DNA of 64,000 nt from Chlorokybus atmophyticus (GCA_009103225.1 RHPI01000026.1:1-64000), one strand, 5' to 3'. Shown: positions 2,298 through 63,500, numbered from the stretch's first letter. The notes: a model not told the origin generated them from the letters alone. Translations and numbers: made by a program.

Positions 2298-5200
2298 GTC
2301 AATGTAAGGTTACACTCGTTGAGGCATATGCCTGTATACAACATGCATGTTACATAAAAGGGCAGTTTACAACTAAAATATAGTATACATGCCCCATGTT
2401 TGCCATCAATGTTGAAGTTGAAGCTACATAAGTTTAACTTATGTCTCATTGCATGAGCATACGGTGGGAACATAAACAAAAATACTCGGGTGCAAACCTT
2501 TGTGAACGAATTGCGACAAGTACATTGAACAGACAACAATGAAGATATTGTGGTTGATTGCAGTATGCATACATGATGTAGCTTGTGTACAACTTGTGAT
2601 TACGCCATCATCATATTAATTGCTGCAAGTAGTAAAATAATGGGCATTATCAACATTTCACGTGTGCCACATAATGCACAACCGGTCTGCCGCAGCGGCT
2701 GCGACCTAAGCATTTGAACGTAAAGAGTCTTTTCACTACCGGGCCAGGAGCAAAAAGTACGTATATTGTATAATTGCATGGATCCTAAGATAAGTATTCT
2801 GATTCTGCACCAGAGCTAATAATATATAGCTTACGAGCGATAACTTTAGATTATGAAGCTCATTTGGGGGTGGACTGGTTATGTAGTTAAGTAACTGCTA
2901 AAACCATCACCATATTCATTAATTTTAATATCATCGGAGCAAGTTGAATGTTCGTGCTATCTTACCCATGGCCTCAACCCAGCCTCAACTAGACTCTTAC
3001 TCATCCTCCCAACCCATCCCTAGCATCTCTTGCCGCTCCGACCCCGAGACCCCCCTCTCACCCTCCAACGCCGACCGCTGCCATGGATAGCCCGATTTAC
3101 GACAGCTGGCGCATCTTAAGGATGTCTAACCGTGTGCTGCTGTAATGTCATGATCATGATTGGAGGTGAGGGTAGGGTCGACTAGCTTGCTGACATGTTA
3201 TTTTGTGTAATGTAACATGTATATGTACACCCAAGATACCATGTTCAAGTTTAGATGTACACATGAATATGGCTACAACAAATGTTATTAAGGTGTTTCA
3301 ACATTGATCAAATACCAACATGTTTGGACATGCAGCAAGTATTATATAATGTTTATTGCATGTGCAAACTGTGTTGGTAATTTGTGGTAAAATGTACTGC
3401 AATTGAATTGGGTTTCATGGTTGCATTTAGTGCTTTCTATCGCGTCGTATAGCAATACAAAGTCATACGATCAAGAAAAATTTCAAGTACATGCATTTGT
3501 GTGATGTTAAAACTGATGTTCTCGAGCGATTGGCAACTAGACCAATAACATGATCAATTGGGCATGCGTGATCATCAAACAAATGTGATTTTGTGAATAT
3601 CCAATGATGGAAGTAAATACTATACTGTTGATCAAAAGGTGCCTTACAATATAGTGATACCTTGCAATGCAGTGCAATCTTAAATATGTTCATGTCAATT
3701 GGCAATCATCAGAATGAAAGGGTGCAAACTGTGACCAAACCTGGAGTAAATACATGGAAGCGCTAATAGTGTGGCAGATCGCATGCAGCAGCGTTGAGTG
3801 CTTGTGGCCATCAGCAATCTACCAGCGTTAAATATGGTTGCTGCAGCACATCGAGTTGGTCGACCGGGTGAACTGTCTATCACCAATCAATTGGCAGCTT
3901 GGTACATGGCTGCTGTGGAGCACGACGAGCTTATGGTGGACTACTCATGATTATAAATGGCGCTAAGGTCCGCAGTGGAGCTGTTTAAGTACATCGTAAA
4001 TATACACAGCGACAATCCGCCCGCCCAAGTCGGGACTATTCGTAACAACTTCGTGAATAGTTGCCGAAGTTGCTGGAAAATTTCTTGTGCGCTATTGTTG
4101 CGGAGCAACTTGCCACCATATTGCAAATGAGCGATCATTAATGCTTCTCTAAAATGTAGAAATTGTTTTCGACTTGGTTAGAGGGCTGTACACTACATTG
4201 CTCTCACATGCGGTGCTGGTAGACCAGCATTCATAACCTGAAATCGATGTGCCTTCAAATTGCGCTCGAAAGTGGCTGTCTGCCCCGCTCTTAAGAATTT
4301 GCAAGCAGAGTTGATCCTCTGATTTTGATGACATGCCAATTTATGCACTGCAACAACGTTTTGCAGCAATATTGAATGTTGCATTGCACATAATTGCAAC
4401 CCATGTGTACGCGCTAATAGAGCGCTGCACTGGCCTTAGCTTCATGCATGCAATTGCTTGACTGCTTGCGTGCACTACTTGCCTAGCATGAACCCTGTTA
4501 ACTGAGTATCACGCTCAAGCAGACTCTTTGAAGCACAAGTGAATGTCTATATCAGTCACGCTATCATCAATGAGCGCTGGCCCTACGTAAGCAAAAAACG
4601 CGCCTAGTCTCGCTCGGCATACCCGCACAGTTTTTTACCACCAACAGTTGGCATCAGGCATTCGCCATCATTGGAGCTATCATTTTAGCAATTGCTCATG
4701 TTGCAAACTGTTCGTACGAACTTCAACATTTATATATGTCAGCAACAATGATTTTCACGAGCAATACCCTAAATGCTTTACAAGATATACTACTCCAAAT
4801 GCTGCATGACCCGCCCCTTGTATACTAAGGGACGCAGCAATCACCTCCTAAATGAGAGCAAGTTGATGGCAGCGTTTCAAATGCTGCTTATTCGTTGAAT
4901 GAGGGATGCAGCAACCAACTTACTCAATTATACAAAGGGGACGTTCGTGTCCCTCATTTGATAATGATACACATAACACCATGCGTACAACAATTTTAGT
5001 CAAAGCACTTGTCGTTCCCGTCGTAGTGCTCTTTAACATAATAACGGGGACGTATATTACGAGGTGGCGATGGTTTTAACATGTTGAGTAGCGATCTCTA
5101 CAACTTGCGCACATTACGTATCATCAACAAACAATGTATAGTGATGATACACTCCACATCTTAATTGCATTGCACAATGGTATAACTAATAGACATGTGC

Positions 5201-15448: not shown

Positions 15449-18400
15449 TTACCCCTTCTTCCTCTTCATCCGCTCAATGTTCTCGTACGCCCTCCCCGGC
15501 GCTATGCGAACAAAGTCCCCGAGGCGAGGCGGCATCTCACCATAGGCTCGCCGTTGGCACCCGCCCACGCACTCCACCAGGTTGGCAGGGAGATCCCCGC
15601 CGGTCTCTGCCTGGGTGAGCGCGCGGCGGAGGAGGGAGGCTAGGGCGGGGCGGTTGAAGGACGGGGGATCCAAAAGTTGAAGGGTGTCTGTGGGAAGGGT
15701 TAGTGTAGTGAGAGGTACGAGGCATCAGGATTGAGGGGCGTACATGTGCGCGCGTGCGCAAGATGTAGTTGGCATGGTGTGGATGAGCAAGACGTCTAGT
15801 ACAGTTGCTTTGGTATGCTCTCTGAGACTGACTCGTAGTGAAGTTGAGACGTGAGCCCTCAAGGCCCTCGCGCATCTGTCATGGCTGTTGTATCAACACG
15901 GGATGCGCTTTTGCGCTTTCACGCCGGTAAATATAGCAAGTGGTCTCTTGTCCCNNNNNNNNNNTGTCTGCTGTGTGCTCATAATGTGCGTCGAGCGTGC
16001 GGGTGAGAGCGACTGCTGTCCACTCTGTCAGGTGGGGCAACAATGTGTGGATAGCAAAGCCGGTAGGGCTGTCGCGGGGGCGCGGGATCGCCCTCGTTGC
16101 GGACGTCATGGGCGTGGAGTACGGCGCTCCCTATGTGGTTCAGCGCTACATTAGCAGGTAGCGACAAGCACGCACGCACACGCGCACACCACTCCTGTCA
16201 TGCGGCGTGGAGCGTGTCTAAGTTGTGTCTGTCTGGCATTGTCAGTCCTCTACTCGTGGAGGGTTACAAATTTGACCTGCGGCTGTACGTCGTCGTCACT
16301 TCCTTCAGCCCCCTGGAAGCATTCATATATAAAGAGGTGGGCATGCTCGCACACACTTACGCGCATGCACGTGTGCGTGAGAGAAGCAACAACATTGTGC
16401 ACATGCGGCTTGATCACAACCCTCGTTGTGTCTCAGGGCTTCGCGCGATTCAGCACTGTGCCTTACACGCTGGACGACCTCAGCAACCTGTACATACACC
16501 TAACTAACTCCGCCGTGCAGAACGAGCGCTTAGCCTCAGACCCAACAGCAAAACTCCCCCCTTTCCTCCCCCAACAACAACAACACCAACTCCACGTCCC
16601 CACCACCGACACAACATCTCCCCCCTCATACGACTCACTCTACGGCGGGAGCAAGTGCTGCCTCAAGCACGTGTTCACCCTGTTGGAAGAGTCGCATCAC
16701 CCAATAACAATCGACACAACAACTCTGTGGGAGCGAATCGTGTCGGATGTCGTGCTCAAGTCCCTCTTCGCGGCGCAGGAGGCCAGTCCCAACATCATAC
16801 CAAATCAACCAAACAGTTTCGAGCTGTTTGGGTATGATGTATTGATCGACTCGGATGCAAGGCCGTGGCTGATTGAAGTGAACTCGTCGCCGTCGTTGGC
16901 GGGAGACACGCCGCTCGACATCGCGCTCAAGACACAACTCATGGCAGGTGCGGGTGCATGTGCATGCATGTGTGCGTGCGTGCGTGCGTGCGTGCGCGTG
17001 CGCGTGCACGTGCGTGTGCGGGGTGTGCACCTGTGGGCATGCACGTGCAGGCGGGTGTGCGTGCAGGCGGGTGTGCACGTGTGTGCGTGCGCTCCTGCAT
17101 ATGGAATGGCGTGTATGAGCAATTGTGCTTGTAGGTTGTGTGTGCTGACAGCATGCATGCGCACGTACGCTGACTATATCTGTGATACTGATATAGTCAG
17201 CGTACGTGCGCATGCATGCTGTCAGCACACACAACCTACAAGCACAATTGCTCATACACGCCATTCCATATGCAGGAGCGCACGCACACACGTGCACACC
17301 CGCCTGCACGCACACCCGCCTGCACGTGCATGCCCACAGGTGCACACCCCGCACACGCACGTGCACGCGCACGCGCACGCACGCACGCACGCACGCACAC
17401 ATGCATGCACATGCACCCGCACCTGCCATGAGTTGTGTCTTGAGCGCGATGTCGAGCGGCGTGTCTCCCGCCAACGACGGCGACGAGTTCACTTCAATCA
17501 GCCACGGCCTTGCATCCGAGTCGATCAATACATCATACCCAAACAGCTCGAAACTGTTTGGTTGATTTGGTATGATGTTGGGACTGGCCTCCTGCGCCGC
17601 GAAGAGGGACTTGAGCACGACATCCGACACGATTCGCTCCCACAGAGTTGTTGTGTCGATTGTTATTGGGTGATGCGACTCTTCCAACAGGGTGAACACG
17701 TGCTTGAGGCAGCACTTGCTCCCGCCGTAGAGTGAGTCGTATGAGGGGGGAGATGTTGTGTCGGTGGTGGGGACGTGGAGTTGGTGTTGTTGTTGTTGGG
17801 GGAGGAAAGGGGGGAGTTTTGCTGTTGGGTCTGAGGCTAAGCGCTCGTTCTGCACGGCGGAGTTAGTTAGGTGTATGTACAGGTTGCTGAGGTCGTCCAG
17901 CGTGTAAGGCACAGTGCTGAATCGCGCGAAGCCCTGAGACACAACGAGGGTTGTGATCAAGCCGCATGTGCACAATGTTGTTGCTTCTCTCACGCACACG
18001 TGCATGCGCGTAAGTGTGTGCGAGCATGCCCACCTCTTTATATATGAATGCTTCCAGGGGGCTGAAGGAAGTGACGACGACGTACAGCCGCAGGTCAAAT
18101 TTGTAACCCTCCACGAGTAGAGGACTGACAATGCCAGACAGACACAACTTAGACACGCTCCACGCCGCATGACAGGAGTGGTGTGCGCGTGTGCGTGCGT
18201 GCTTGTCGCTACCTGCTAATGTAGCGCTGAACCACATAGGGAGCGCCGTACTCCACGCCCATGACGTCCGCAACGAGGGCGATCCCGCGCCCCCGCGACA
18301 GCCCTACCGGCTTTGCTATCCACACATTGTTGCCCCACCTGACAGAGTGGACAGCAGTCGCTCTCACCCGCACGCTCGACGCACATTATGAGCACACAGC

Positions 18401-21400
18401 AGACAGATACAGGCGCTTGCGAGCGCACACACTTGCGCACATGCACACACACACACACACACGCCGCTCGCATGTACACATCCCAACATCACGTGTACAA
18501 CCGCATCCCACCGCACCTGTCTCGTCCGTCCTGTCCCGCGCAATCCCCCGCTGTCATTTGCATGTTGACGTACTCGGTGGCGGTCCCGTCGAACGCCGCG
18601 GCGAAGGCGACCCACTCGAGAGGGAGTCGGAACGTGGGCGGGGACACGTTGTCGAAGGGGCGGGTGAGGGGACGGAGGAGGGAACAGGACGCGAGACGCT
18701 GCTTCAGCTGGGCCTGTTGACACGAGGTGACGCAATGAGGGCGTGTGTATGATGTGTCAGGGTGGTGCGCACACAGGTAGACACACACACAATTGCTGAC
18801 ACACGCATACAGACGCTCGCACACACGTGCACAAATATCCACACTCACGCTCACCCACCTGCACGCACCCACATGCACGTACGTGCGCACGCACACACCA
18901 CTGGTTCTCACCTTGCTGGTGAGGGACTTTGCGCCCGGGTAGTGGTTGACCCTCTGCCAGGAGAGCAACTCCGCATAGGTTACCTTCGGTCTCTAAACCA
19001 CACGCACATCCCAAAAACATCACCGTCACACCCTCCACAACACTCCCAAGCACCAACACACTTCACCACAGCAAACTGATGACACAAGTCACACATACCG
19101 CAGCCCAAGACCAGAGCAGATTCCAAGCACGCATCATTTTCACCCCACTCCTCATCTCATCCTTGTTGTTGGATGACTCCTTCTCCTTCTTCTCCTCTTC
19201 CTCACTACTATTCTCTTCTTCCACCACCACAAGCCATCCGATCCGTCCGCACGCCCGCGCCATCACGGCCGCGACCTCGGGGTGTCCTGCGTTGGCGGAC
19301 ACGAGGACGACGCGCTGGGAGGGGGGGAGCGAGGGGGGCCAGGAGGACAGCTCAAGGCAGAGGGCCTGGGGGAGGGACAGTGTGGGTGCATGTGTGTGTG
19401 TGTGTGTGTGTGACAGCCTGTTGTGCTTACTCTGCACACGGCGAGGAGGGACTGTGTGTCTTGGTGCTGTGTTGGATGACTCTGTGTGTTGCCGCTGCTG
19501 CTGCATTTGGCGCGGTGCTGTTGGCGAGCACTTAAGCCCGGAAAGAACGTCTCCAACATCCGGAAAATACCTGCCGTTGTGTGTGAGTGCGTGTAGGTGC
19601 GTGTGTTTGTGGTTGTTGTGCAAGCCGTTTCATCATGTGAATACAATTTACACGCTATTGCACACTCTCACAACGCCCACTTGCCTGTGTTAAGTCCACC
19701 ACCAAGCACGCCCATCCCCCGTCTGCGTGCCCGTGCGGTGTGTGCACTGTTGGCCATCACCGTCGACACACTCGACGCACACTCTCCAGACCCAACACGC
19801 TCCATCCGCGCACTCTCCTCCTCTTGACTACCCGGTCCTGCGTCCTCCCCGCACTCCGGTCGGTCCTGGGATAAGTTGGACAACACCGGCCCTGAATAGG
19901 ACCTCTTCTCCACAAGAGTGAGAGTGGAGTCCCGGGATCGGGTCGCGGGAGAGTCGGGGAGGGAACGTTCATGGTTTCTCACAGTGTTGGGTTCATCATC
20001 GTGGTCATGGTCGTGGTTGACTTCGGCTTCGTGCTGGTGGACGATGTGTGTGACAAGAGCGTGAGCAGGTGTGTCATCCCCCCCGAGGTAGTTATCGGCC
20101 TGGTCCTGGAACCCGCCCTTTCCAGGTGCGAGTTCCCCGGCTGTCTCAGCGCAGGCCTCTTCTTCCCCTCTACCTAATGCTACTTCTCCAAGTAGTCCTT
20201 CTTGTATTTGTCCTCCTGGTCCTCCCTCTAGACCTCCTTCTGATACTCCTACTCCTCCTGCCCCTTCTGGTTCTTCTCCTTCTCCTTCTCCTTCTCCTAC
20301 TTCTTCTACTCCATCTTCTCCTTGCTGGCACTGTTCTACACCTGTATCCTCCTCTTCATCTTCACTTGAAGAAGTAGTGACAGACGCTGATGATGCCGAT
20401 GGTGATGTGGACAAGGCAGGTGTGGGAGTAGACGTGAGAGGGTAAACACTTGCGTGTGGTTGTGTTGCGTGCTCTTGTGTTGTGGTTGTGCAACAATTGT
20501 CGTCTGCGTGATCGGCGTCATTGTCATGGAGAACAACGGTTTTATTGTTGGGATGCGCGCGTGTGTCCTTGTGGGTGAGAGGTGCAAATGGATCGATCTG
20601 CGATGATAACAGTCCGTTTGAACCCGTATCCTTCTTCATGTTGGAGTAGCGCGACAGGTGCCACTTGTGACGGGTACAATCCTGCCGCAAAAGAAGGGCA
20701 GTTCTGTGCGTTGCACTCGCACACACGCACACGCACACGCACACGGACACGGACACGGACACGGACACGCGCATGTGCTCATGCACACATAGGCGCACTC
20801 AAATGCTCGTGCGTATCCAGCCACACGCGAACACGTGCGCGTGTGCGTACTGACATGCACGCAAACCTGCACACATGCGCACACAGGCACGCGCTCACTC
20901 GCTCAGTGTCACTCGTGCACGCGCACGAACAGGCGCGCACGCATGCGCGCACACACATACACGCACGCACACGCACACGCACACGCACACTCGCACTCGC
21001 ACGCACTCACGCACGTGCATGCACATCTGCGCACTTGCCAACACACCCACATACGCACAAGCGCGCACATAGCCCATGCACGTTCTCACTCACGCACGTG
21101 CAAGCACACATACATATACATAAAGGCACGCGCACGCGCACACGCACACCTGCGCGCATGTCTCCAATGCCCCGCTACGCCGCGCCTCGGCATTCCTCCT
21201 CAGCTCCTCAGCCCTCTTGCCGTGCTGCTGCTGCTGCTGCTGCTGCTGTTGTTGTGGTTGTTGTTGTCGTGCCACCACGGGAGGAGGCGCGTACCGCGGC
21301 GGCGCGTCCACAACGTACGCTGCCGCAGATGCGTGTGGAAACTGTGACTTCTTCTGATTCTGAATCAGAGTTTGAGCCTGAACCTGAGGCTGAGCCTGGG

Positions 21401-30360: not shown

Positions 30361-31137
30361 GACTGCGAGCAGCCATATAACATGCGTGCTTCAGCTTGAC
30401 CCAAATTGTTATCAAACACAGGCTTAACACCAAGACAACCGCTTCATAACTCAACGGCTGGTAGCAACAACCAGGTGGGCAAGTCAACAGGCACAGCGGA
30501 TTGCGTCGCCCATTGCCAATTGGACGCTCTTCAACAAGCAGCGAAGCACGGAACGAACAAGCACATCAATGGCTGCAAGCAGCTATAAACCTCACCTCAG
30601 CAGCTGAACTCCAATTTCGAGTCACCTCAGGCTGCTGGTAGGCAAACACAAGCCGGCTTCGGAAAACAGCCTACGAGGCCGTCCTCTCACCACAAACTCC
30701 TGCAGACTACCGCAACATGCGCAATCGTGAGCAGAACACCCAAATACCACAGCGCCTCTCCCCTACACCACAGGCACAGGCGGCAGGCAATGCCACAGGC
30801 AGCAGCAGCAGCAGCAAGTTCATCTTGCCTGAGCCGTCAGCAGATCTCGCTCGCGGTCCAGAGAACCTTTCCGACCCAGTTCCACAAACCCATTTCTTGT
30901 ATCGGAAGAGGCAGAGAACGATCCAGATGCAGTTACGCAACGTACCAAGGATGGTATCGTATTTAGGGTTTAAGACGACTTTGCCTTGGGCAGGGTAGCG
31001 GCGGCGGCGGTGGCGGCGGCAGTGTGGCGGGGTGTACGTGCTTCTTAATGGTGCTGTGTAGCTGCAAGTGGTTGTGTTAAATGATGTGGTCTGTGAGGCG
31101 ATGAGTTGATAGTTTTGGAGAAGGGTTAGTTGCGAGC

Positions 31138-34100
31138 ATGGCGCTGGTAGCGGCTGAGGCTGCTGCGGCGCCTTCCGCTCCAGGGCCTTCCGGCAGGCAG
31201 CCGGATGTGTCATCTGAGTGGGAGAAGCAGAAGCGCAATCCTCCGCCTCCCAATCTGCAAGCAGTCTCTGCGCCGCACATTGCCTCCTTTGACTGGCTGC
31301 TGTCCCAAGGCATACACGAAGCCATTTCAAGGGTAGAGCCAGTGGAGGTCACGCATACCAGCACCAACGCTCGTCTGCGAGATATCCCCTCTGCTGCTAG
31401 CTTGTCTTATGTTCCCTTGTTGCTTGTATCAAGTGCAGTACACCATAGCAAGTGTCTTTTCGTCATTGTGCATGCTCGCTGTACATTACTAGTGCAGCTC
31501 ATCTCATATGCATGCATAATCAGGCGTTGCGTGCTTTGTGCTAAGTACGTTAGCCACGATTGTTCCCGCCTTGACTGCTTCGCACTGTGGATGGAAAATT
31601 TGGTTCCGCATCATCCCCTGAAGGATCTCAGCGAAAATGCAGCCGACGAGCGACTACTGCCCAGCGAGGTAGGTGTGTAAGCGCTTGACCTTGCCCTCTA
31701 ATTGTAATTGTACACATGGAGGCGTTACCTATATGACCAAGGTTTCATGTCAGTCCTTGGCTCATTGTTTGTGCTGACATGCGTGCTTGTCGTGTGCTTT
31801 GCAGTGCCGGGAAGGGGGGCTTACGTACAGCGGGTCATTATCAGTTGATGTATGCTACCAAGTGGATACGGGACCTGTACAGCGCGCTACAAGGAAGGCC
31901 GGACAGTTTCCTGTCATTGTTCTGGTGCGCATGATACAAGCAATGCTTCATGGTGTTGGTTGCAAGCCACACGCTTCGCATGCAATTTGCCAATTGCTTC
32001 TGTCCATCACAGTCATCCTCCTCACGCCGGGCTGGTGTTGCAGTCAAAGCTGTGCCACCTGCGAGGGTTGTCGCAACAGCAGCTTGTCAAGGCAAAGGAG
32101 GAGCCGTTAGAGTTTGGCGGGTAAGTCACTTTGTTGTGTTGATCTTTCAACTCGAGTGTGCTGCGACAATACTGATTTAGGATACGAATCAGGTACTTCA
32201 TTGTGAACGGTATTGAGCGCATCATCCGCATGCTCATCCAGCCTCGCCGCCACCATGTTTTTGCGCTGAGGAGGTCTGCCTTCCTTAAGCGTGGTCCTCA
32301 GTACACAGATTATGGGACTACCATCAGGTACTTCGCACCCTGGCTTGAAGATGATTCGACATACGCAGTGTCACTTGCTAACATGCCTGCTCTTACAGGT
32401 GTGTACGTCCCGACCAATCAGCAATTACAGTGCGGCTGTATTATCTCCAGACGGGTTCATGTACTGTTGGGTTTAGTCTGCGGCGGCGCGAATATCTGAT
32501 ACCTGTTGGAGTTGTCCTTAAGGTATGTGCCCAACCATAATGCAGCATAGTAGTCACAAACTGCAGGCAAGCTTGCCAAGAACCTGGCATGGTATACATT
32601 CATGGTTGCATGCAATTGATAGTGCCGTCAGTCTGTTGGTGCTAGTCGTTTTCATTCTGAAAGCTGTACATGCAGGCCATGATGGAAACTACGGATCGTG
32701 AGGTTTATGAGAAGCTTGCAGCACCCAGCAGCCTTGGAAGCTCTGATCCAGAGGTATGTGCCTGATCAGGATGCACACGTCCTGACTGTGCTTCACCCAT
32801 GTGTCTCTCGCTCCACGTGCAGTTGGATGCAGCTGTGCAATACGCCATGGAACGAGCAGAGTTGTTGCTTCAAGAGACACAGAGGCTGGAGCTGTACACT
32901 CGTCAACACTGCCTTGCGTACTTGGGAAACCGGTTCCGTAGCGTGTTAGAAGTGCCCGAGACCAAAACAGACGTGGCGGTGAGGATGACTTGCATCAGGT
33001 TATGCATAACAGCTCTGTGGTCAATAAGCTGATTGCACGTCCATTACTGCTGCCTGGCAGGTCGGGGAGCAACTTCTCAATGACTACATCTTTGTCCACC
33101 TGTCACAACCCCACGACAAGTTCAACCTTCTGATATTCATGCTGCGCAAGCTGTTTGCACTTACCAGTGGAGCCATCGCTGCCGACAATGGTGATGCATT
33201 GCATCTTCAAGAATTGTTGCTTCCAGGCCATCTCATCAACATGTTTCTCAAGGTGCACGCAATTTGAACAGCGCCAGCAGCCCTCGAGGTCATGCAGCTG
33301 TACGATTGTGACTGACATTCCAACTTGCTACTGTCTGCTTTCAGGAAAAGATGCAGGAGTGGCTCAGAAAGTTTAAAGTCAACGTAGTAAAAAGTCTCGT
33401 AGAGGGTCTTGGGCCAAAACAAGCAGTCGACTTCAATGATCCAGCATATTTCAAGACAATCCTTGACAGAACACCGATTGACCTTGGGCAGAAGTTGGAA
33501 TACCTTCTCTCCACTGGCAATCTCCAATCCACAAGCGGGCTGGACCTGCAGCAGGTGAGTGGCTGGAACTTGCAATACTCCACAGTATGGCCGCCCTCTG
33601 GTAATGACGCTGATGCCGCCTGCACATTCCAGGCGACAGGTTTTACAGTGGTTGCCGAGAAGTTGAACTATCTGCGCTATTTGTCACACTTCCGGTCTGT
33701 TCATCGAGGCGCTTACTTTGCGGAGCTTCGAACTACAACCGTACGCAAGCTTCTACCAGAGTAAGCTTCTCGACTTCCGGCTGTTGCTTCTGTATCATTG
33801 CTTGCCTATCACTTGTCACCTGGACTGACACAACAACTTGGCAGATCGTGGGGTTTCATGTGTCCCGTGCACACCCCAGACGGGTCGCCTTGCGGCTTGC
33901 TCAACCACTTGACGATGACCTGTCAAGTGGTCACCGAAGTGCGTACTGATGAAAGTACCACAGAAAAGGCCATCGCCGAAGCTCTTGCTGACCGCGGCAT
34001 GATGCCGTTGTCGGCATCGCTGCCGTTACCACAGCCCCCTGCCTATCTCCCCGTCATGCTTGACGGCAGACTTCTTGGCTGCATCGCAAACGCAAATATC

Positions 34101-36594
34101 TCGTTTGCTGTTGCGGAGTTGCGTGCCCTGAAAGTTGACCGTCAGAGCAAGGTGAGCACATCCCAGCGTGTTCTGAAGCAGATTGCTCCTGCAGACTACT
34201 TTGTTAAGCTGCAAGTATGGTCCTGCCATAGGTACCGGAGCATCTCGAAGTTGCTTACATACCTCCTGAGCGATTCGGCCCATACCCTGGCTTGTTTCTG
34301 TTCACGCAAGCAGCAAGAATGATAAGGCCTGTCCAGCAAAGTGCTTCTGGCAAAAGGGAGATGATTGGCACATTCGAGCAGGTGCGTACATAATAGTCAG
34401 CAATTGGCAACCCTGCGCAAACGTGTCCTTACATGCATGAGACATGTTCTGGCAGGTGTACATGGACATTTACTGCCAGGATGGCGGTAATGGAGGCGGC
34501 ACAGAAGCAACGCATGTGGAGCTGCACCCCACTTCCATGCTTAGCATTGTGGCTAACCTGACACCCTGGTCAGACTACAACCAAAGTCCTCGTAACATGT
34601 ACCAGTGTCAGGTAAGCAGGGTTGCTTTACAGGCTGTTAGCATCAGGCAATCAGTGACATACTCGCCATGCTGAGCATTGTTTACATCGCAGATGGGAAA
34701 GCAAACTATGGGCCATACCATGCACTCGCAAAACCACAGGCCTGAGAATAAGGCTTACCGACTGCAGGTACTGCCCAAACTGGCCTCGACCTACAACATT
34801 GAAGTTGAACATGCCCTTCAAGCTTGCCACTAACTTGCATCAATCTACAGAGCCCGCAGACCCCCATCTGTAGGACAGATGTGTATGACCGGTACCCTAT
34901 GGACGACTATCCTGTCGGCACGAACGCCATTGTCGCTGTCATATCCTACACCGGGTATGACATGGAGGATGCCATGATTATCAACAAGTCTTCCATGGAG
35001 CGCGGCTTCTGCCACGCTTCCCTCTACAAGGTGTGTGTCGCCCCGATCTAAACCTACGCAACCAGTGTCCAAGGCTTAAGCTGTCTGTATTGCGCAGACA
35101 GAGACAGTAGACCTCAGGTCGCTACGGTCACAAGGCCAACCGATCACCAATGTGTTCGCCCGCGGTACTGATGACAAGTCCGGCAAAAGCAAGTTGGATC
35201 GGTTTGTTGATAGGGATGGCCTGCCTTTCATTGGCCAGGTCAGTTGTGTTTTGGTTCTTATTTTACCAGTCTTGGGCATGACTAACTGTGGGTAGCCGAT
35301 GTTTGCAGCCGCTGGTCAGTGACGAGCCATATTGCAGCACGGTGAACACGATCACAGGGAAGGCGAAGGTGCACAAGCTGAAGGGCACAGAGAGTGCAGT
35401 GGTGGAGCACGTCGCTCTGGTTGGCTGTGGTGCCACAGAGCAGCTACAAGCTGCCAAGGTGTGTGCGCGTGCGTCTGTGCATGTTGAGTCCTTCCTGTTT
35501 GCTGGTGTGCCAGGCACTCAGATAGTCCTGAACAAAAAGCGGAAGCAATGACGCTGTCCATCAGCTGTGATTTGTTCTCTCGTCAGCTTCAGGCATATTG
35601 TTTATGCACTGTACAATGGGTGAGCCCCTGTATTCACCACATGACATCCCGGCTCAATCCACGGTGCTACATGCACTTGGTCACACCTGTGCAACGAGTC
35701 TCCATCAGACACAACACTGACAACACTCCTTGTCACCAACAGATCAAGTTGAGGTATAACCGCAATCCCGTCATCGGCGACAAGTTCAGCAGTCGCCACG
35801 GGCAGAAAGGTGTCCTGAGCCAGCTCTGGCCAGATGAAGACATGCCGTGGGCAGCAACCACCGGGATGCGTCCGGACATCATCATCAACCCGCATGCCTT
35901 CCCGAGTCGCATGACCATTGGCATGCTGGTGGAGAGCATGGCTGGCAAGGCCGGTGCCCTACATGGCAAGTACCAGCGGGCGACTCCTTTCCAGTTTGAC
36001 GTTAAGGATGAGGAGGGCGGCGTGGTGGGCAAGTACGGCCGCGAGCTCGCTAAGGCGGGCTTCAATTACCACGGCACGGAGATCATGCACAGCGGCGTGC
36101 TTGGCACAGAGCTCCACTGCGAGATCTACCTCGGCGTGGTGTACTACCAGAGGCTCCGTCACATGGTGTCGGACAAGTTCCAGGTGCGCAGCACGGGACC
36201 CATCAACCCGGTCACGCACCAGCCCGTGAAGGGCCGCAAGCTCGGGGGCGGGATTCGCTTCGGGGAGATGGAACGAGACTCCCTCCTCGCCCACGGCGCG
36301 GCCTTCCTCCTCCACGACCGCCTGCACACGTGCTCGGACTACCATGTCTGCGACGTGTGCACCATCTGCGGCAGCATGTTGTCGACCAACCCCGTCCCGC
36401 GCGGTGTGGATGTGGGACTTGCTCCTAATGCGGGCGTGGGTGGTGGCGGCGGTGGTAACCACCAGCGGCGCGTGGAGTGCCGGGTGTGCAAGACCGGAAG
36501 GGGCATTGAGCGCGTGGCCATGCCTTATGTGTTCAGGTACTTGGCGTCCGAGCTGGCGGCGATGAACATGCGCGTGCAGCTAGAGGTGGCGTAG
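31138..36594 (+). CDS. RPA2: DNA-directed RNA polymerase I second-largest subunit (RPA2/RPA135), about 20 exons
   Basis: PHIASFD; [10 protein letters not shown]; [63 protein letters not shown]; [15 protein letters not shown]; [19 protein letters not shown]; [11 protein letters not shown]; [16 protein letters not shown]. Confidence 0.97.
31382..31585 (+). other. U12-type (minor spliceosome) AT-AC intron, first intron of RPA2
   Basis: 5' end G|ATATCCCCT; branch CCTTGAC at 31569-31575, with the A 11 nt from the 3' end; 3' end GCAC|TG. Splicing yields NARLRVWMENL. Confidence 0.8.
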
Positions 36595-37209
36595 AGGTTG
36601 AGGGATAGCTGTCATGTTGTGGCTGGAGAATTGTTACTTGCTGCTCTGGCACTGGTAGTCTGTGCTGGCTGGTGTGTGCAGCAGGTGTGTAGGTTGGTGA
36701 GATAGTTGTACAGACACGTGAATTGCTGCAAATTTTGCTCACACCCTGTGAGCAATTGTTGTTGTTTTGTTGTGGCGCATCACCGACTGTTGTTCCAGCA
36801 ATGTACCTCCAAAGGTAGTGTTGGCCTGCCTTCCATGCACTCATAACTCTTGCAGAAGATGAGACAACACTCCATCAATGTGCACACATGGTTTGTCTCA
36901 CAGGGACTGAATGTCTTTGGTTGGTTGTGCACCATGGCGATTGTGTAATTCCACTGACACACAAGTACAACTCTCACGTTGTCGCACTTGCACAGTGATT
37001 GTAGATATGTGCATACAGTGTTTCAGCTATGTGTATCGCATGCCAAGTGGTTCTGCAGCAGTTGCCATCGGTGCAATTTACTCAAATAGATCGTTGTACA
37101 AGGCATGGACATCTGCCGACAATTTCCCAAGACGGATGAATGAAAAACCAAATTAGGGCACCCGTGGTGTTAACCTACACCAGAACTGCATGCCATCCAT
37201 CCGTCTGCT

Positions 37210-39357: not shown

Positions 39358-42935
<3,578 letters not shown>

Positions 42936-57729: not shown

Positions 57730-59968
57730 ATGGGACGCAGCAAGGCAGCGCCGCTGCTGCTGATTAAAGTCCGTTCCTCAGATCAGGTGTGTACCTGCGC
57801 CCCTGTTTGTTGGCCTACTGCATACACACAGAGACACAGACAAACATACACTCAGTCACACGCTTCTCTGCAACACACTTGAAACGTTGATTGGCTTGCT
57901 ATCAATACGTGTCCTGTACAGCTAGCATATCTTGCTAGATGCTGATTCCCGCACAAGCAGCGCCAACATCAGGACCACAACTTCTTGTGGTTTACACTTT
58001 CTCATGCAATCCCAAACATGGCTCCAAGCCCATGGTGCTGCAGTTTGTCGCGTATAAGACAACCTTGTAATCAACATAAACAATAGTGACAACACACAAA
58101 CGCACACGCATGTGGATAATCAAGTTGGTGATGCGCGCGCATACACGCACGCGCACACACGCACGCATGCGAGAGAGATCTACAACACACAGACAGACAC
58201 GCACGCGCAAGATGTATACCAACACAAGCACAGTCTTCTGTCGTTGATCATCTCTTGCGTGCAAACTAATGCAACATACCCCTCAGGTTCCAGATACGGC
58301 GCACACGCTATCCTACCAACAGCATGTCCAGATTATCTCCCCGTTCCCCAGCACACGGCCGCCGCTCTCTAGACATCAATAACAGTGTCAACAACCACAA
58401 ACCCACTACTATCGGCCACCTCCCGCGTATCGGGAAGAGTCTCGACATCCCCGACGCACGGTGGCGGGAGGATGACACGAATGGGAATGGTGTGGGTGTG
58501 GGTGTGGGTGTGGGTGCTGATGCAGCAGAAGATAATGATTTTGTTATTGGGGACGTGTTGGGTGTTGACAAGCGTGATGACGGTCGGCCTACCACATTCG
58601 ACCACGCGCTAGTAAGGGGATTGTGGTGTTGATGGTGGTGACGATGATGACGTGCACTTGTTTGTGTGTTTGCGTGTGTCTGCTGGACACTCGCGCCCAC
58701 CCCCGCACGTGCACGCACGCACGGGCGCAGACACACGCACACACTTCCCTTTCATGCGCAAGCACGCACGCACGCACACACCTCCAAGCGCAAGCACACA
58801 AGCGTACGCGTACACACACAACATTTCTCTCCCGCCAGCCTGAATTTCAGTGGGTGTCTGAGCGTGAGCGCGAGCGTCGCACCAGCGAGTTCACGCGCTC
58901 GTTGGACCGCGGGGAGCGTCTGCAGCGTTCAAACTCAAGGCCGAGGCTGTCTCTATCGCCGGCCGCGTTGCCGACGAGTCGCTTCTCCTCGCCGCCGTCT
59001 TCCTCGGAGTCCTCCGCCACCATGTCCCCCACCACATCCAACCCAACCTCACCCACCTGCACAACCTCACCGTCGTTGAACCACGTTGACGCCCTCGCAC
59101 CGCACATCAAGTTCCCGCTCTCACGCAGCCGATCACTGGATTCCACCTCAGACTTGCGGCACGTAAGCGAGCACACACACATGCATGTATGCGCGCGCGC
59201 GCACGCGCACGCACATGCCCNCCACACAGCAACCTCCATGTTATCATCATCAGGCGGCAAAGCTTGAGCGGAGAGGGACGTTGCAGGATCGTTCCCTCGT
59301 ATTGAGACACGAAGAGGTGCCCAACAACAACACCAGTTCCAATGAGAACCCCCCTCAAGGCCCCAACGGCAACGCTGCCAGCACGGCAGCAGCAGGGCCT
59401 TCCCTCACGCGGCGCATGACGTTCGGGCGATGGTATCTCCCACCTTCAGAGGTAGGATTACCGGCATGTTTACAAGTTGACATGTGTATTTTTGGGTTGA
59501 TGTGTCACGGTATGGTGTGTCACCTACAACATTATGATTTATTGTTGTTGGTTGGTGAAAGCACAGTGGCGCAGCACGCAGCAAGTTGCAGGCAGCAGCG
59601 GTGGTAGTGGTAATGGTGACAACGCCACGATGCCCGCTTCTGCTATTCCGTTGACCAGAGTCTTCCACACAGAGAAGGTGGGTTGTTGTTATTGTTGTGT
59701 TGAAGGTTCAGCATGTGAAATAAATGCCATACACGCGCAGCCTGAGGTTTTAGACGACGTCAAGCGAAGGTACGGCGGTAAAGCATTTAAAGGTGAGGAT
59801 ATGTTGCGCATGTGTACTAATTGAGGTTGTATACTAGCAGCTTGCAAACGACTGCTCGTCCGTGCAGAGTACCTTGTTGAGAAGGGCGAGAGCGTCCCTC
59901 ATTACCTGGAGAGGGTCACCACAATCAAGGAGGACCGCAAGGCCGCTCTGGCCCTTCACCTCCCAAAG

Positions 59969-60045
<77 letters not shown>

Positions 60046-60335
60046 CTGTGTCTGTGTCTGTGTCTGTGTCTGTGTCTGTGTCTGTGTCTGTGTCTGTGTC
60101 TGTGTGACTGTATGACTGTGTGCGTGCGAGCGCATGCGCGCTTATGTCATATAAAGCCACACACATCATCAGTCACACTCCATGCAGGTATCCGAATCAG
60201 GGCCAGGGGAGCCCGACGGAGAGCAGAAGGGCGAGCGTTCTGGATTCGCCACCATTGTCTCCGCGCGCGACGGAGGACAGGCTTTCGAACTCTCTTGCGA
60301 GGCTGCGCGCACTGTCCACGGCGCGAGATAGCTAA
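57730..60335 (+). CDS. Unknown Ser/Pro/Arg-rich protein, multi-exon; start uncertain
   Basis: Phase-compatible GT-AG exons give ...RRMTFGRWYLPPSE...PEVLDDVKRRYGACKRLLVRAEYLVEKGESVPHYLERV...RLRALSTARDS*. Introns are filled with CA/TG and TC repeats. Confidence 0.55.
59974..60106. repeat. Compound (TC)n + (TGTGTC)n microsatellite at the start of an intron
   Basis: Directly visible; begins at the donor GT. Confidence 0.97.
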
Positions 60336-60594: not shown

Positions 60595-63500
60595 TCACCC
60601 TTTGAACCCAATCATACTGGACCCCTCGCCTGTTTGAACCGGCATGTACTGTTCGCTCAGTCGAATGGTCGCCACCCTGTTTTGCTCTTCCACGAGCAGT
60701 CTTCCCTCCGCAAGCAAATTTTGAAGCGTCAGCTGCACACGTGGTATGTTCAGCAAGTTGTAGCGATTTGGTCGTTCACGTCAACTCAAAGCATGCCCTA
60801 CAGCATTTGCAACACTGCTAAACGCTAGTTGTTACCGCAGGCCTGTCAAAGGAAGGCTTGGCCTCTTTGCTATTGACGAGCCGCTTTCCCATCTCTTTTT
60901 CTCCTCCTATGCTTTTGATCCACTGCGAGCATGTCATCACGAGCATCAGACAGTGGCACAGGAATCTGGCAGTAAACTATGCCTGAAGTGCTCGTGTTGC
61001 TACTTACCGTCCTGATCTGATCATCGTATGTACGCGAACGCATTGCGCCATAGAAGTCCAATGCTGCCACAGATCAACGTTTGCTTGTAATCAAGTCAGT
61101 GTTCAAAGCAGATACAGGTGCTTGTACAACCTGACTCTGGTCATGTAGTGCATGGCAAAGTGACGCAAAAGCCGCAGCATGGCTTGTTGTGGGTTGTTAT
61201 AAGGTTTTGGTACATACGCTGATCGGGGTATGCGTCTACAAGCACCGCAATGTCACGTTCTGTAAAGCCGTCATCTCTATACATGCGATGGACAACTTTG
61301 ATTATGTCCTCCCGCGTAGGCTGCCTGCCCAGGCAACATGTCACAGTCAGAGGCATAGGCTCGCGTCACCCTGGTAAAAAAGCCAGCCACCACACAGCAA
61401 CCCACCAAAGAAACTTCTCCATCCGACCATCACGTATGAGCGGAGCGTAAATGGTGCTCAAGTCATTGCCGGTAACAATGATCGGTATCCTTTGCACCAC
61501 CTCATCTTCACGCCAAACTTCTCCAATGCTCACTTGCTCGGGGTTGTCCGCCAGATTCATGAGACTCCCAACAACCATCTGGTTGTTTACAGTCAGTTGT
61601 GTATTGGCTGCCACCAACCAGTATGTTAATAACCGCCGCAAGCTTCATGACTACATGCACAGCTTTCATAATAGCCGCTCCCAGTGCAGTGCTTACCAAA
61701 TCGCCCAATGCCAGCATCCAAGTCGTTGATCATCAGACAGCCCAACTTTCCCTAGATGGTAACATTACATGACATAATTGGCATGTGTGCATGCTCAACT
61801 CTTTTCACTGAACTGGCACTGACGAGGACAGAGCAGGCTATACCTTAATTCTTGCGGAAGCCGAAGCCTCCTTGTAGCGTTGGCGTATCAGTCTTCCTGG
61901 TTCACCTGTGAAACACGCTCAAGCTCAGCCGCAGAGTGACCAGTCTTATCCGTGACAACATATGACAGTCGCGTACTTGTGCACTAGCAATACAAGCACA
62001 TGCCTGCCCACTCGCCCTCGAGCTCTCCCGCTGACATGATGACCGGTTCAACGCCGAGAGCCTTGAAGATCAGCTCACATTGAAACGATTTTCCCTGGCC
62101 CTTAGCACCCCAGACTCCTAAGCAATAGATCATGCTTAGGCTTTGGACGGCTGCTATCCAGCAGGATACAACACAGACTATCCAATAAGGAGATGCATAC
62201 CATCCCTGTCTCTGACATGTGCACTTACCCAGTATAAGTGGCACGCCCACATTTGTCTCTTTGGGCAAAATGTAGTTCTTCATGATGTGCATGACTACAA
62301 CAACAGCAAGGCATGTTAGCAACCGCTTGGTGAAGTCCTCAATTACTTCACTTCGTTTTCAAAGACCCCAATATGCATGGAGACTGCTAGGTGCTTGTGC
62401 TGCTCTGAGGGCAAGAGGCGTTCACGCACGGCTCAAATCAAGTTGACAACATCGGGGCGTTTTTTCCACTCACCAACTTTTTCCTACACCAAACCAACGA
62501 GTATACAACATAGTCAGCACCACGCTGAGTTGTTGTTGATTTCTATTCTGACATGTGCACAACAATGCTGTACAGTCAACATCCGTAACAACCAACCACA
62601 CCTACCAGCAAAGCTGGCGCGATATAGTAATCGCCTTGCAAGTGGTTGAACTCTCGTGTCACCTTCTGACGGTATTTGAACACAATGTCCGCTATAATAT
62701 CAAGTCAGCTTGCTGGGTGCTTAGCTGGCAACAGTGCATATCCAAGTTAACTCGAGTGCATGAAGGGGGCTCACCGTCTTTGCCAAGGAAGTCCCCTATG
62801 AACACATCATCAATGACACCTTGCTTGGCGCCGACAGCAATGTTCATGTTTTCCGACTCTTTTCCCTGCTCGCATTGACCATAGCGTCAAGTGCACAGCA
62901 AGGATACGGGATGACCGTGACGACAGTCAACATGTTTCCACAGTTCTGCACAGCGCGTGCTGAGTTCATTGACTGAATGCGAGGTAACTGTGACTGCCCA
63001 AACACTGGCTTGAGAGTACATTTGCTTGCGAAAGCCTCCACTACGTCATTGACCCAGAGATTCAAGACCCTTAAAGCCACCCAAGATGGTGGATCGCATT
63101 GTACAGACACTGTACGTTAGTTGATCGTTGCTGTACTCTACACTGTGACGAGCTGCTCTTTCATGCGAAAGCACTCCAAGTCTGTGCCATGCGCGAACTG
63201 CCCCTCTCAGCAATGTGCCTCTTGCATACAGCAATGTCCGTGCGTTCAGCATACCAGCCAATGCACTCATTGCGCAGCTTGCATTAAGATTATAACATGA
63301 TAAGACAGCATAAACGCACCAGCTTGACAAGGTAGTCGTTGCCCTCGGAGTCAACAGCCTCCCATGAGGATTGCTTCGACAGCCGCTTCTGGTTGCTGTT
63401 GCTGCTGCTGCTCGCTGCGCCTGAAGTGCCTGGGTTCTGTTCCTGCCTTTGCGCAGCAACCCTGCGTGTGCTGGGCCTGGCAGCAGCAGTGCCCCGCCCC

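Follow-up and report, generated by a model that had tools for sequence, protein, structure and literature searches.

An AT-AC intron, very probably of the U12 type, is excised from transcripts of the RNA polymerase I gene RPA2 in the streptophyte alga Chlorokybus atmophyticus

Introns of the U12 type are characterised by a 5' splice site of the form /RTATCCTT (a slash marks a splice site throughout), a branch box TCCTTRAC located about 10–15 nt from the 3' splice site, and either AT-AC or GT-AG ends, while AT-AC introns of the U2 type carry a U1-like GTRAGT-type 5' site with A at position +1 and no TCCTTRAC branch box. In streptophyte algae, minor introns together with minor snRNAs have been described for Chara and Klebsormidium, and for Chlorophyta none have been reported (PMC10639083, PMC11347168); streptophyte algae were once lumped under the statement that green algae lack minor splicing (PMC10639083). 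In Arabidopsis, intron 1 of NRPA2 is a stop-free AT-AC minor intron of 96 bp (Suzuki et al., bioRxiv 10.1101/2020.10.19.345900). Only about 10% of NRPA2 transcripts are spliced at this intron in drol1 Arabidopsis, DROL1 being a protein of the U5 snRNP that is specifically required by AT-AC minor introns, and SMC1 is another gene named as containing an AT-AC intron in this plant (bioRxiv 10.1101/2020.10.19.345900). A literature search revealed no paper pairing Chlorokybus with U12; Chlorokybus does not appear in the text of the supplement to PMC10639083, and the Chlorokybus genome paper contains no discussion of introns.

The DNA analysed here, referred to as the window, is a stretch of 64,000 nucleotides from Chlorokybus atmophyticus (GCA_009103225.1 RHPI01000026.1:1-64000). 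It contains a gene for RPA2 (NRPA2 in plants), the second-largest subunit of RNA polymerase I, the identity of which was assigned by protein similarity, in agreement with a preliminary description of this DNA. The features relevant to the first intron of this gene are as follows.

31138..36594, plus strand: RPA2/NRPA2 coding region, 19 exons, 1185 aa, from RNA joints and three inferred GT-AG introns
31138..31381, plus strand: RPA2 exon 1, from the ATG to ...ARLR and the first base of a Val codon, ending at an RNA joint
31382..31585, plus strand: RPA2 intron 1, 204 nt, AT-AC, phase 1, very probably U12-type, from an RNA joint and a match in position to land plants
31382..31390, plus strand: 5' splice-site motif of intron 1, ATATCCCCT, with the U12 core ATATCC followed by C rather than T at +7 and +8
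31569..31575, plus strand: branch-site motif of intron 1, CCTTGAC, with the presumed branch point at the A of position 31574, 11 nt from the 3' end
31584..31585, plus strand: terminal AC of intron 1, from the RNA joint
31586..31668, plus strand: RPA2 exon 2, from RNA joints, the gene model and homologue alignment

When the last exon was searched against 1.8 billion representative proteins, the best full-length named matches were RPA2 proteins. Over 1183 aa, the spliced model shares 99.8% identity with the public protein jgi/Chlat1/7071 (eukprot), and we take Chlat1 to be the JGI portal code for Chlorokybus atmophyticus. The precomputed Pfam domains of jgi/Chlat1/7071 are PF04563, PF04561, PF04565, PF06883 (RNA_pol_Rpa2_4), PF00562, and PF04560, and through this near-identical protein the RPA2-specific domain 4 (PF06883) can be assigned to the gene in the window. 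The sole difference between the two models is found near the C-terminus (approximately 36480-36594), where the Chlat1 protein is without FR and has a different, longer tail; RNA contigs from two sequencing runs are colinear with the window over 35778-36700, which favours the window-derived C-terminus.

The next best match was jgi/Mesvir1/13505 from Mesostigma, with 59% identity; both the Chlat1 and the Mesvir1 entries were found by a word-index search seeded with a Mesotaenium protein. In a tree of 73 full-length RPA2 sequences, built with a fast alignment and FastTree, the window sequence groups with Gossypium, Closterium, and Mesotaenium (SH-like support 96), and Prasinoderma is placed outside this group. 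The near-identity to the Chlat1 protein, the position within the streptophyte clade of the tree and the taxonomy all place the organism in Streptophyta: Chlorokybus is a streptophyte, an early-branching relative of land plants, and not a chlorophyte. The suggestion in the preliminary description of a minor spliceosome in a chlorophyte-like alga is therefore not upheld, and that description had itself set out beforehand that a streptophyte placement would leave the intron real and make it much less surprising.

Transcript evidence was obtained from assembled contigs, rather than raw reads, placed on positions 30900-36700. In a search of sequencing runs, the contigs of two runs were found to hold 52–59% of the sampled words of 31000-36700, which is approximately the exon share, and they skip every RPA2 intron, indicating that they derive from spliced RNA. 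A joint 31381->31586, at which 204 nucleotides with the ends AT..AC are skipped, is present both in run X1 (study P1, 2021) and in run X2 (study P2, 2013), as the preliminary description had proposed from the G/TG junction. The two sides of the joint do not overlap, and with zero bases of positional ambiguity the position of the AT-AC cut is fixed. The exon bases between record positions 391 and 670 total exactly 279, so that no extra letters are present at the AT-AC joint. The bin depths are those of the spliced contig alone (for example, 94 exon bases out of 194 at a depth of 52 result in 25.2), and intron 1 is thus covered by no contig. Accordingly, no contig retaining intron 1 was found in X1 or X2, although contigs can drop rare forms and a minor unspliced fraction is possible. 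None of the internal GT-AG pairs within 31340-31640, including the one ending at TTAG near 31552, is used in the RNA contigs, so neither of the two alternatives considered earlier, internal GT-AG splicing or constitutive retention, is seen there. These data confirm that 31382-31585 is a real intron with AT-AC ends, removed exactly at these positions.

All 14 other joints in the transcript table are GT..AG; the three RPA2 joints missing from it were placed on the basis of GT-AG sites, reading frame, and homology. Altogether, the 17 other introns of RPA2 are 67-284 nt long, and all of them begin with GT and end with AG (CAG in 16 cases and TAG in one). The longest of them, intron 18 (35459-35742), has 284 nt versus 67-153 nt for the other GT-AG introns of the gene, and positions 35533-35674 on the plus strand within it match the full length of Rfam family RF01231 (snoR74, a plant H/ACA snoRNA) with 39.7 bits, which is below the gathering score of 44, and an E-value of 8.6e-5. 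The match shows conserved guide-pocket sequences, and an ACA precedes its end by 3 nt. The region 35429-35664 is covered by a separate X1 contig with a depth of 76.8 versus 52. The segment 35533-35674 is probably a snoRNA hosted by an intron of a gene for a Pol I subunit.

Intron 1 begins with ATATCCCCT and ends with GCAC, its 3' boundary being CCTTGACTGCTTCGCAC/TGTGG; its removal joins G/TG into a Val codon and yields ...TNARLRVWMENLV... in the protein. The coordinates, the 5' motif, the CCTTGAC box, the AC end, and the stop-free frame given in the preliminary description are exact to the base. The 5' splice site, /ATATCCCC, contains the invariant core ATATCC of the U12 type and has C at both +7 and +8; the branch box GCCTTGAC, with its A at 31574, falls within the range of distances from the 3' splice site that is characteristic of U12-type introns, and the terminal dinucleotides used in the RNA, AT..AC, are one of the two pairs found in this class. 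With lengths of up to 3 kb allowed, five other combinations of U12-like 5' splice sites and branch boxes occur by chance in the window, and only intron 1 coincides with exon borders set independently by RNA and protein homology. The predicted fold of intron 1 is unremarkable (z = -1.65). A Rfam search of the whole 64-kb window at the gathering score revealed no matches, and hence no snRNA, and a search of the region around intron 1 at E<=1 returned no matches.

A second U12-like candidate, on the plus strand at 61485-61860 (GTATCCTTT ... CCTTAAT ... AG), was rejected as a chance match, since it is antisense to minus-strand exons resembling Rubisco activase and neither of its flanks contains an open frame. 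These exons, identified by eye from the ORF list, occupy approximately 61366-62322 on the minus strand and encode ...VIMSAGELE... and ...IPIIVTGNDLSTIYAPLIRDGRMEKF....

Elsewhere in the window, a perfect inverted repeat of 1219 nt (15965-17183 and 17187-18405, with a 3-nt spacer) runs through an exon of a gene of the tubulin-tyrosine-ligase family and contains two mirror-image ORFs of 511 aa, both matching PF03133; the region 15965-18405 results either from a fold-back artefact of the assembly or from a genuine palindromic duplication. According to the ORF lists, long microsatellites of the (CA)n/(TG)n and (GA)n types are located at 41990-42360 and 59950-60110, and one of them contains an N.

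To read the position of the intron in other species, public NRPA2 proteins were mapped back to their own genomic loci, with the following results.

Chlorokybus intron 1: 5' ATATCCCCT, 3' CCTTGACTGCTTCGCAC/TGTGG, 204 nt, ...LR(V)/WMEN, phase 1
Cotton NRPA2 intron: 5' ATATCCTT, 3' TTCTTGACTTCGTATTTTAC, 406 nt, ...LR(I)/WLDH, phase 1
Marchantia NRPA2 intron: 5' ATATCCTCT, 3' TTCCTTGACTGTCCTCAC, 408 nt, ...NLR(x)/WLDK, phase 1
Sphagnum NRPA2 intron: 5' ATATCCTCT, 3' CCTTGACTAGTTCGCAC/TGTGG, same site as in Chlorokybus
Closterium NIES-64 NRPA2 intron: 5' GTAAGC, 3' CTACGCAG, ...FY(L)/WWEN, phase 1

The AT-AC introns of cotton, Marchantia, and Sphagnum are located at the same codon and in the same phase (phase 1) as intron 1 of Chlorokybus, which follows codon 81 of the spliced model; a comparison of this kind with RPA2 orthologues had been proposed in advance, and it establishes positional orthology. 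The 5' site reads ATATCCTT in cotton, ATATCCTC in Marchantia and Sphagnum, and ATATCCCC in Chlorokybus. In Marchantia and Sphagnum, the branch box is likewise CCTTGAC, at a distance of about 10-12 nt from the 3' end; in cotton it reads TTCTTGAC and lies about 14 nt from the end. The lengths of the introns differ, as does their GC content (0.47 in Chlorokybus, 0.29 in cotton, and 0.40 in Marchantia). The conservation of the splice motifs alone, with length and GC content diverged, points to continued selection by U11/U12 recognition.

At the protein level, the gap-free fit of the spliced product to plant NRPA2 that had been noted in the preliminary description is borne out by the homologue alignment, in which the junction RLRVWMEN aligns with LRIWLDH of cotton, MRVWLEA of Prasinoderma, MTIWIES of Saprolegnia, and LRMWLEE of Hondaea, and none of the aligned RPA2 homologues has an insertion at the intron 1 site. 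Outside streptophytes, no intron was found at this site in Saprolegnia or in the intronless metagenomic relatives P0013 and P0016. A GT-AG intron of Varroa was considered as a positional match and rejected, being located 4-5 codons upstream. With no intron at this position in Saprolegnia, P0013, P0016, or Varroa, nothing indicates that intron 1 predates streptophytes.

Two of the public models used in this comparison require correction at the junction of exons 1 and 2. The NRPA2 model of Sphagnum troendelagicum is wrong at the junction of exons 1 and 2 (locus L009, approximately 1175-1762) as a result of a GT-AG pair forced in place of the ATATCCTCT...GCAC intron; several exon-1 codons are lost in it, and the last bases of the intron are read as coding. 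The model of Closterium sp. NIES-64 (locus L003, approximately 3178-3500) skips the true exon 2 (WWENPSITKP...).

Taken together, these results make it very probable that intron 1 is an AT-AC intron of the U12 type, that it goes back to the common ancestor of streptophytes and that the minor spliceosome removes it. In the proposed course of splicing, the U11/U12 di-snRNP would recognise ATATCC at the 5' end together with the CCTTGAC branch motif located 11 nt from the 3' end, after which the minor spliceosome (U4atac/U6atac.U5) would cut at G/ATATCC and GCAC/TG. That minor snRNPs rather than the major spliceosome cut this intron in Chlorokybus is something we infer from sequence comparison; the inference is a strong one, because the motifs have persisted after the divergence from the land-plant line and because in Closterium, where the intron at this site is not of the U12 type, it carries plain U2-type signals.

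The replacement of the consensus T by C at both +7 and +8 would weaken the textbook pairing with U11 and U6atac. One could hypothesise on this basis that the minor spliceosome of Chlorokybus has a shifted or relaxed 5' splice-site specificity accepting C at these positions (ATATCCCC), perhaps because the 5' end of U11 and the box of U6atac that pairs with the 5' splice site have changed in compensation. If such a change were real, the recognition of U12-type 5' sites in the deepest branch of the streptophytes would represent a natural variant, but we consider it unlikely. C at +8 is already present in the bryophyte orthologues (Marchantia and Sphagnum), so that the Chlorokybus site is one further step away and represents a mild variant. 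The two C bases noted in the preliminary description are real.

The same two bases depart from the U12 consensus in a way that could also suggest a relic, namely, an AT-AC intron which is now removed by the major (U2-type) spliceosome, like members of the rare U2-type AT-AC class. This appears improbable. The 5' site ATATCC, with C at +5 and +6, is unlike GTRAGT with A at +1: it agrees with this U1-type consensus at only two of the six intron positions, and G is found at +5 in 14 of the 17 other introns of RPA2. A U12 branch motif and a spacing shared with bryophytes over a very long divergence are hard to explain otherwise than by U12 recognition, and the GTAAGC...CAG intron of Closterium shows what conversion to the U2 type looks like.

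Regulated retention was also considered, in which the 204 nt are kept in some of the mRNA as a translatable sequence, adding 68 aa to Pol I and providing a control on the synthesis of rRNA. The frame is open from the ATG at 31138, and reading through intron 1 adds 68 codons without a single stop; the length is a multiple of three, and about 7% of composition-matched shuffles are stop-free, which, multiplied by one third for length, gives a chance of about 2% for an intron to be both stop-free and in frame. The 96-nt orthologue of Arabidopsis is likewise in frame and stop-free, and the same idea has been raised by the authors of that study (bioRxiv 10.1101/2020.10.19.345900). On the other hand, the intron is uncovered by contigs in both runs, though rare forms tend to be lost from contigs; insertions at this site are absent from all homologues; the read-through peptide is rich in Cys and Leu and unmatched in any homologue; and the open frame is absent from the orthologous introns of Marchantia, with three in-frame stops, and of cotton, with 406 nt, a frameshift and six stops. 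Regulated retention of intron 1 is, therefore, very unlikely, and the control of rRNA synthesis based on it that had been put forward earlier finds no support in these data. Nor did the expectation that gene predictors would read through the intron prove correct: the public Chlat1 model has ...ARLRVWMEN..., meaning that the AT-AC intron has already been removed in the public annotation.

Finally, the notion that the junction is an artefact of reverse-transcriptase template switching or assembly, or that the stretch is coding sequence, could draw on the use of assembled contigs instead of raw reads, but it can practically be dismissed given that no repeat is present at the two borders, the identical joint occurs in two independent studies, the public protein model and all homologues favour the spliced form, and the position of the intron is conserved in land plants.

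The reading of intron 1 as an inherited U12-type intron places NRPA2 intron 1 at the base of streptophytes, as it is common to Chlorokybus, bryophytes, and angiosperms, with GT-AG ends in Closterium, and provides transcript-backed evidence that the earliest-diverging streptophyte algae still perform AT-AC splicing of the U12 type. Since minor introns of Chara and Klebsormidium and the orthologous intron of Arabidopsis were known, the Chlorokybus case represents expected inheritance and is no surprise. This result, which fills a sampling gap and overturns nothing, is predicted by vertical inheritance along the line from the eukaryotic ancestor to land plants; it has no bearing on reports that minor splicing is absent from Chlorophyta.

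Among the known systems, the AT-AC introns of the U2 type resemble intron 1 of Chlorokybus in their AT and AC terminal dinucleotides, and the difference lies in the ATATCC and the CCTTGAC 11 nt from the end of the latter. Chara braunii and Klebsormidium nitens (Larue and Roy 2023, PMC10639083) are similar in having U12-type introns in algal relatives of land plants, while Chlorokybus belongs to the earliest-diverging streptophyte clade. Closterium NIES-64 shares an intron at the same codon and in the same phase but differs in its GT-AG, U2-type signals, which suggests a likely conversion from U12 to U2 in that zygnematophyte lineage. Intron 1 of Arabidopsis NRPA2 is also close to it, being the first intron of the same gene, with AT-AC ends, and stop-free with a length that is a multiple of three, although it comprises 96 nt compared to 204 nt in Chlorokybus and its exact position is deduced from that of cotton.
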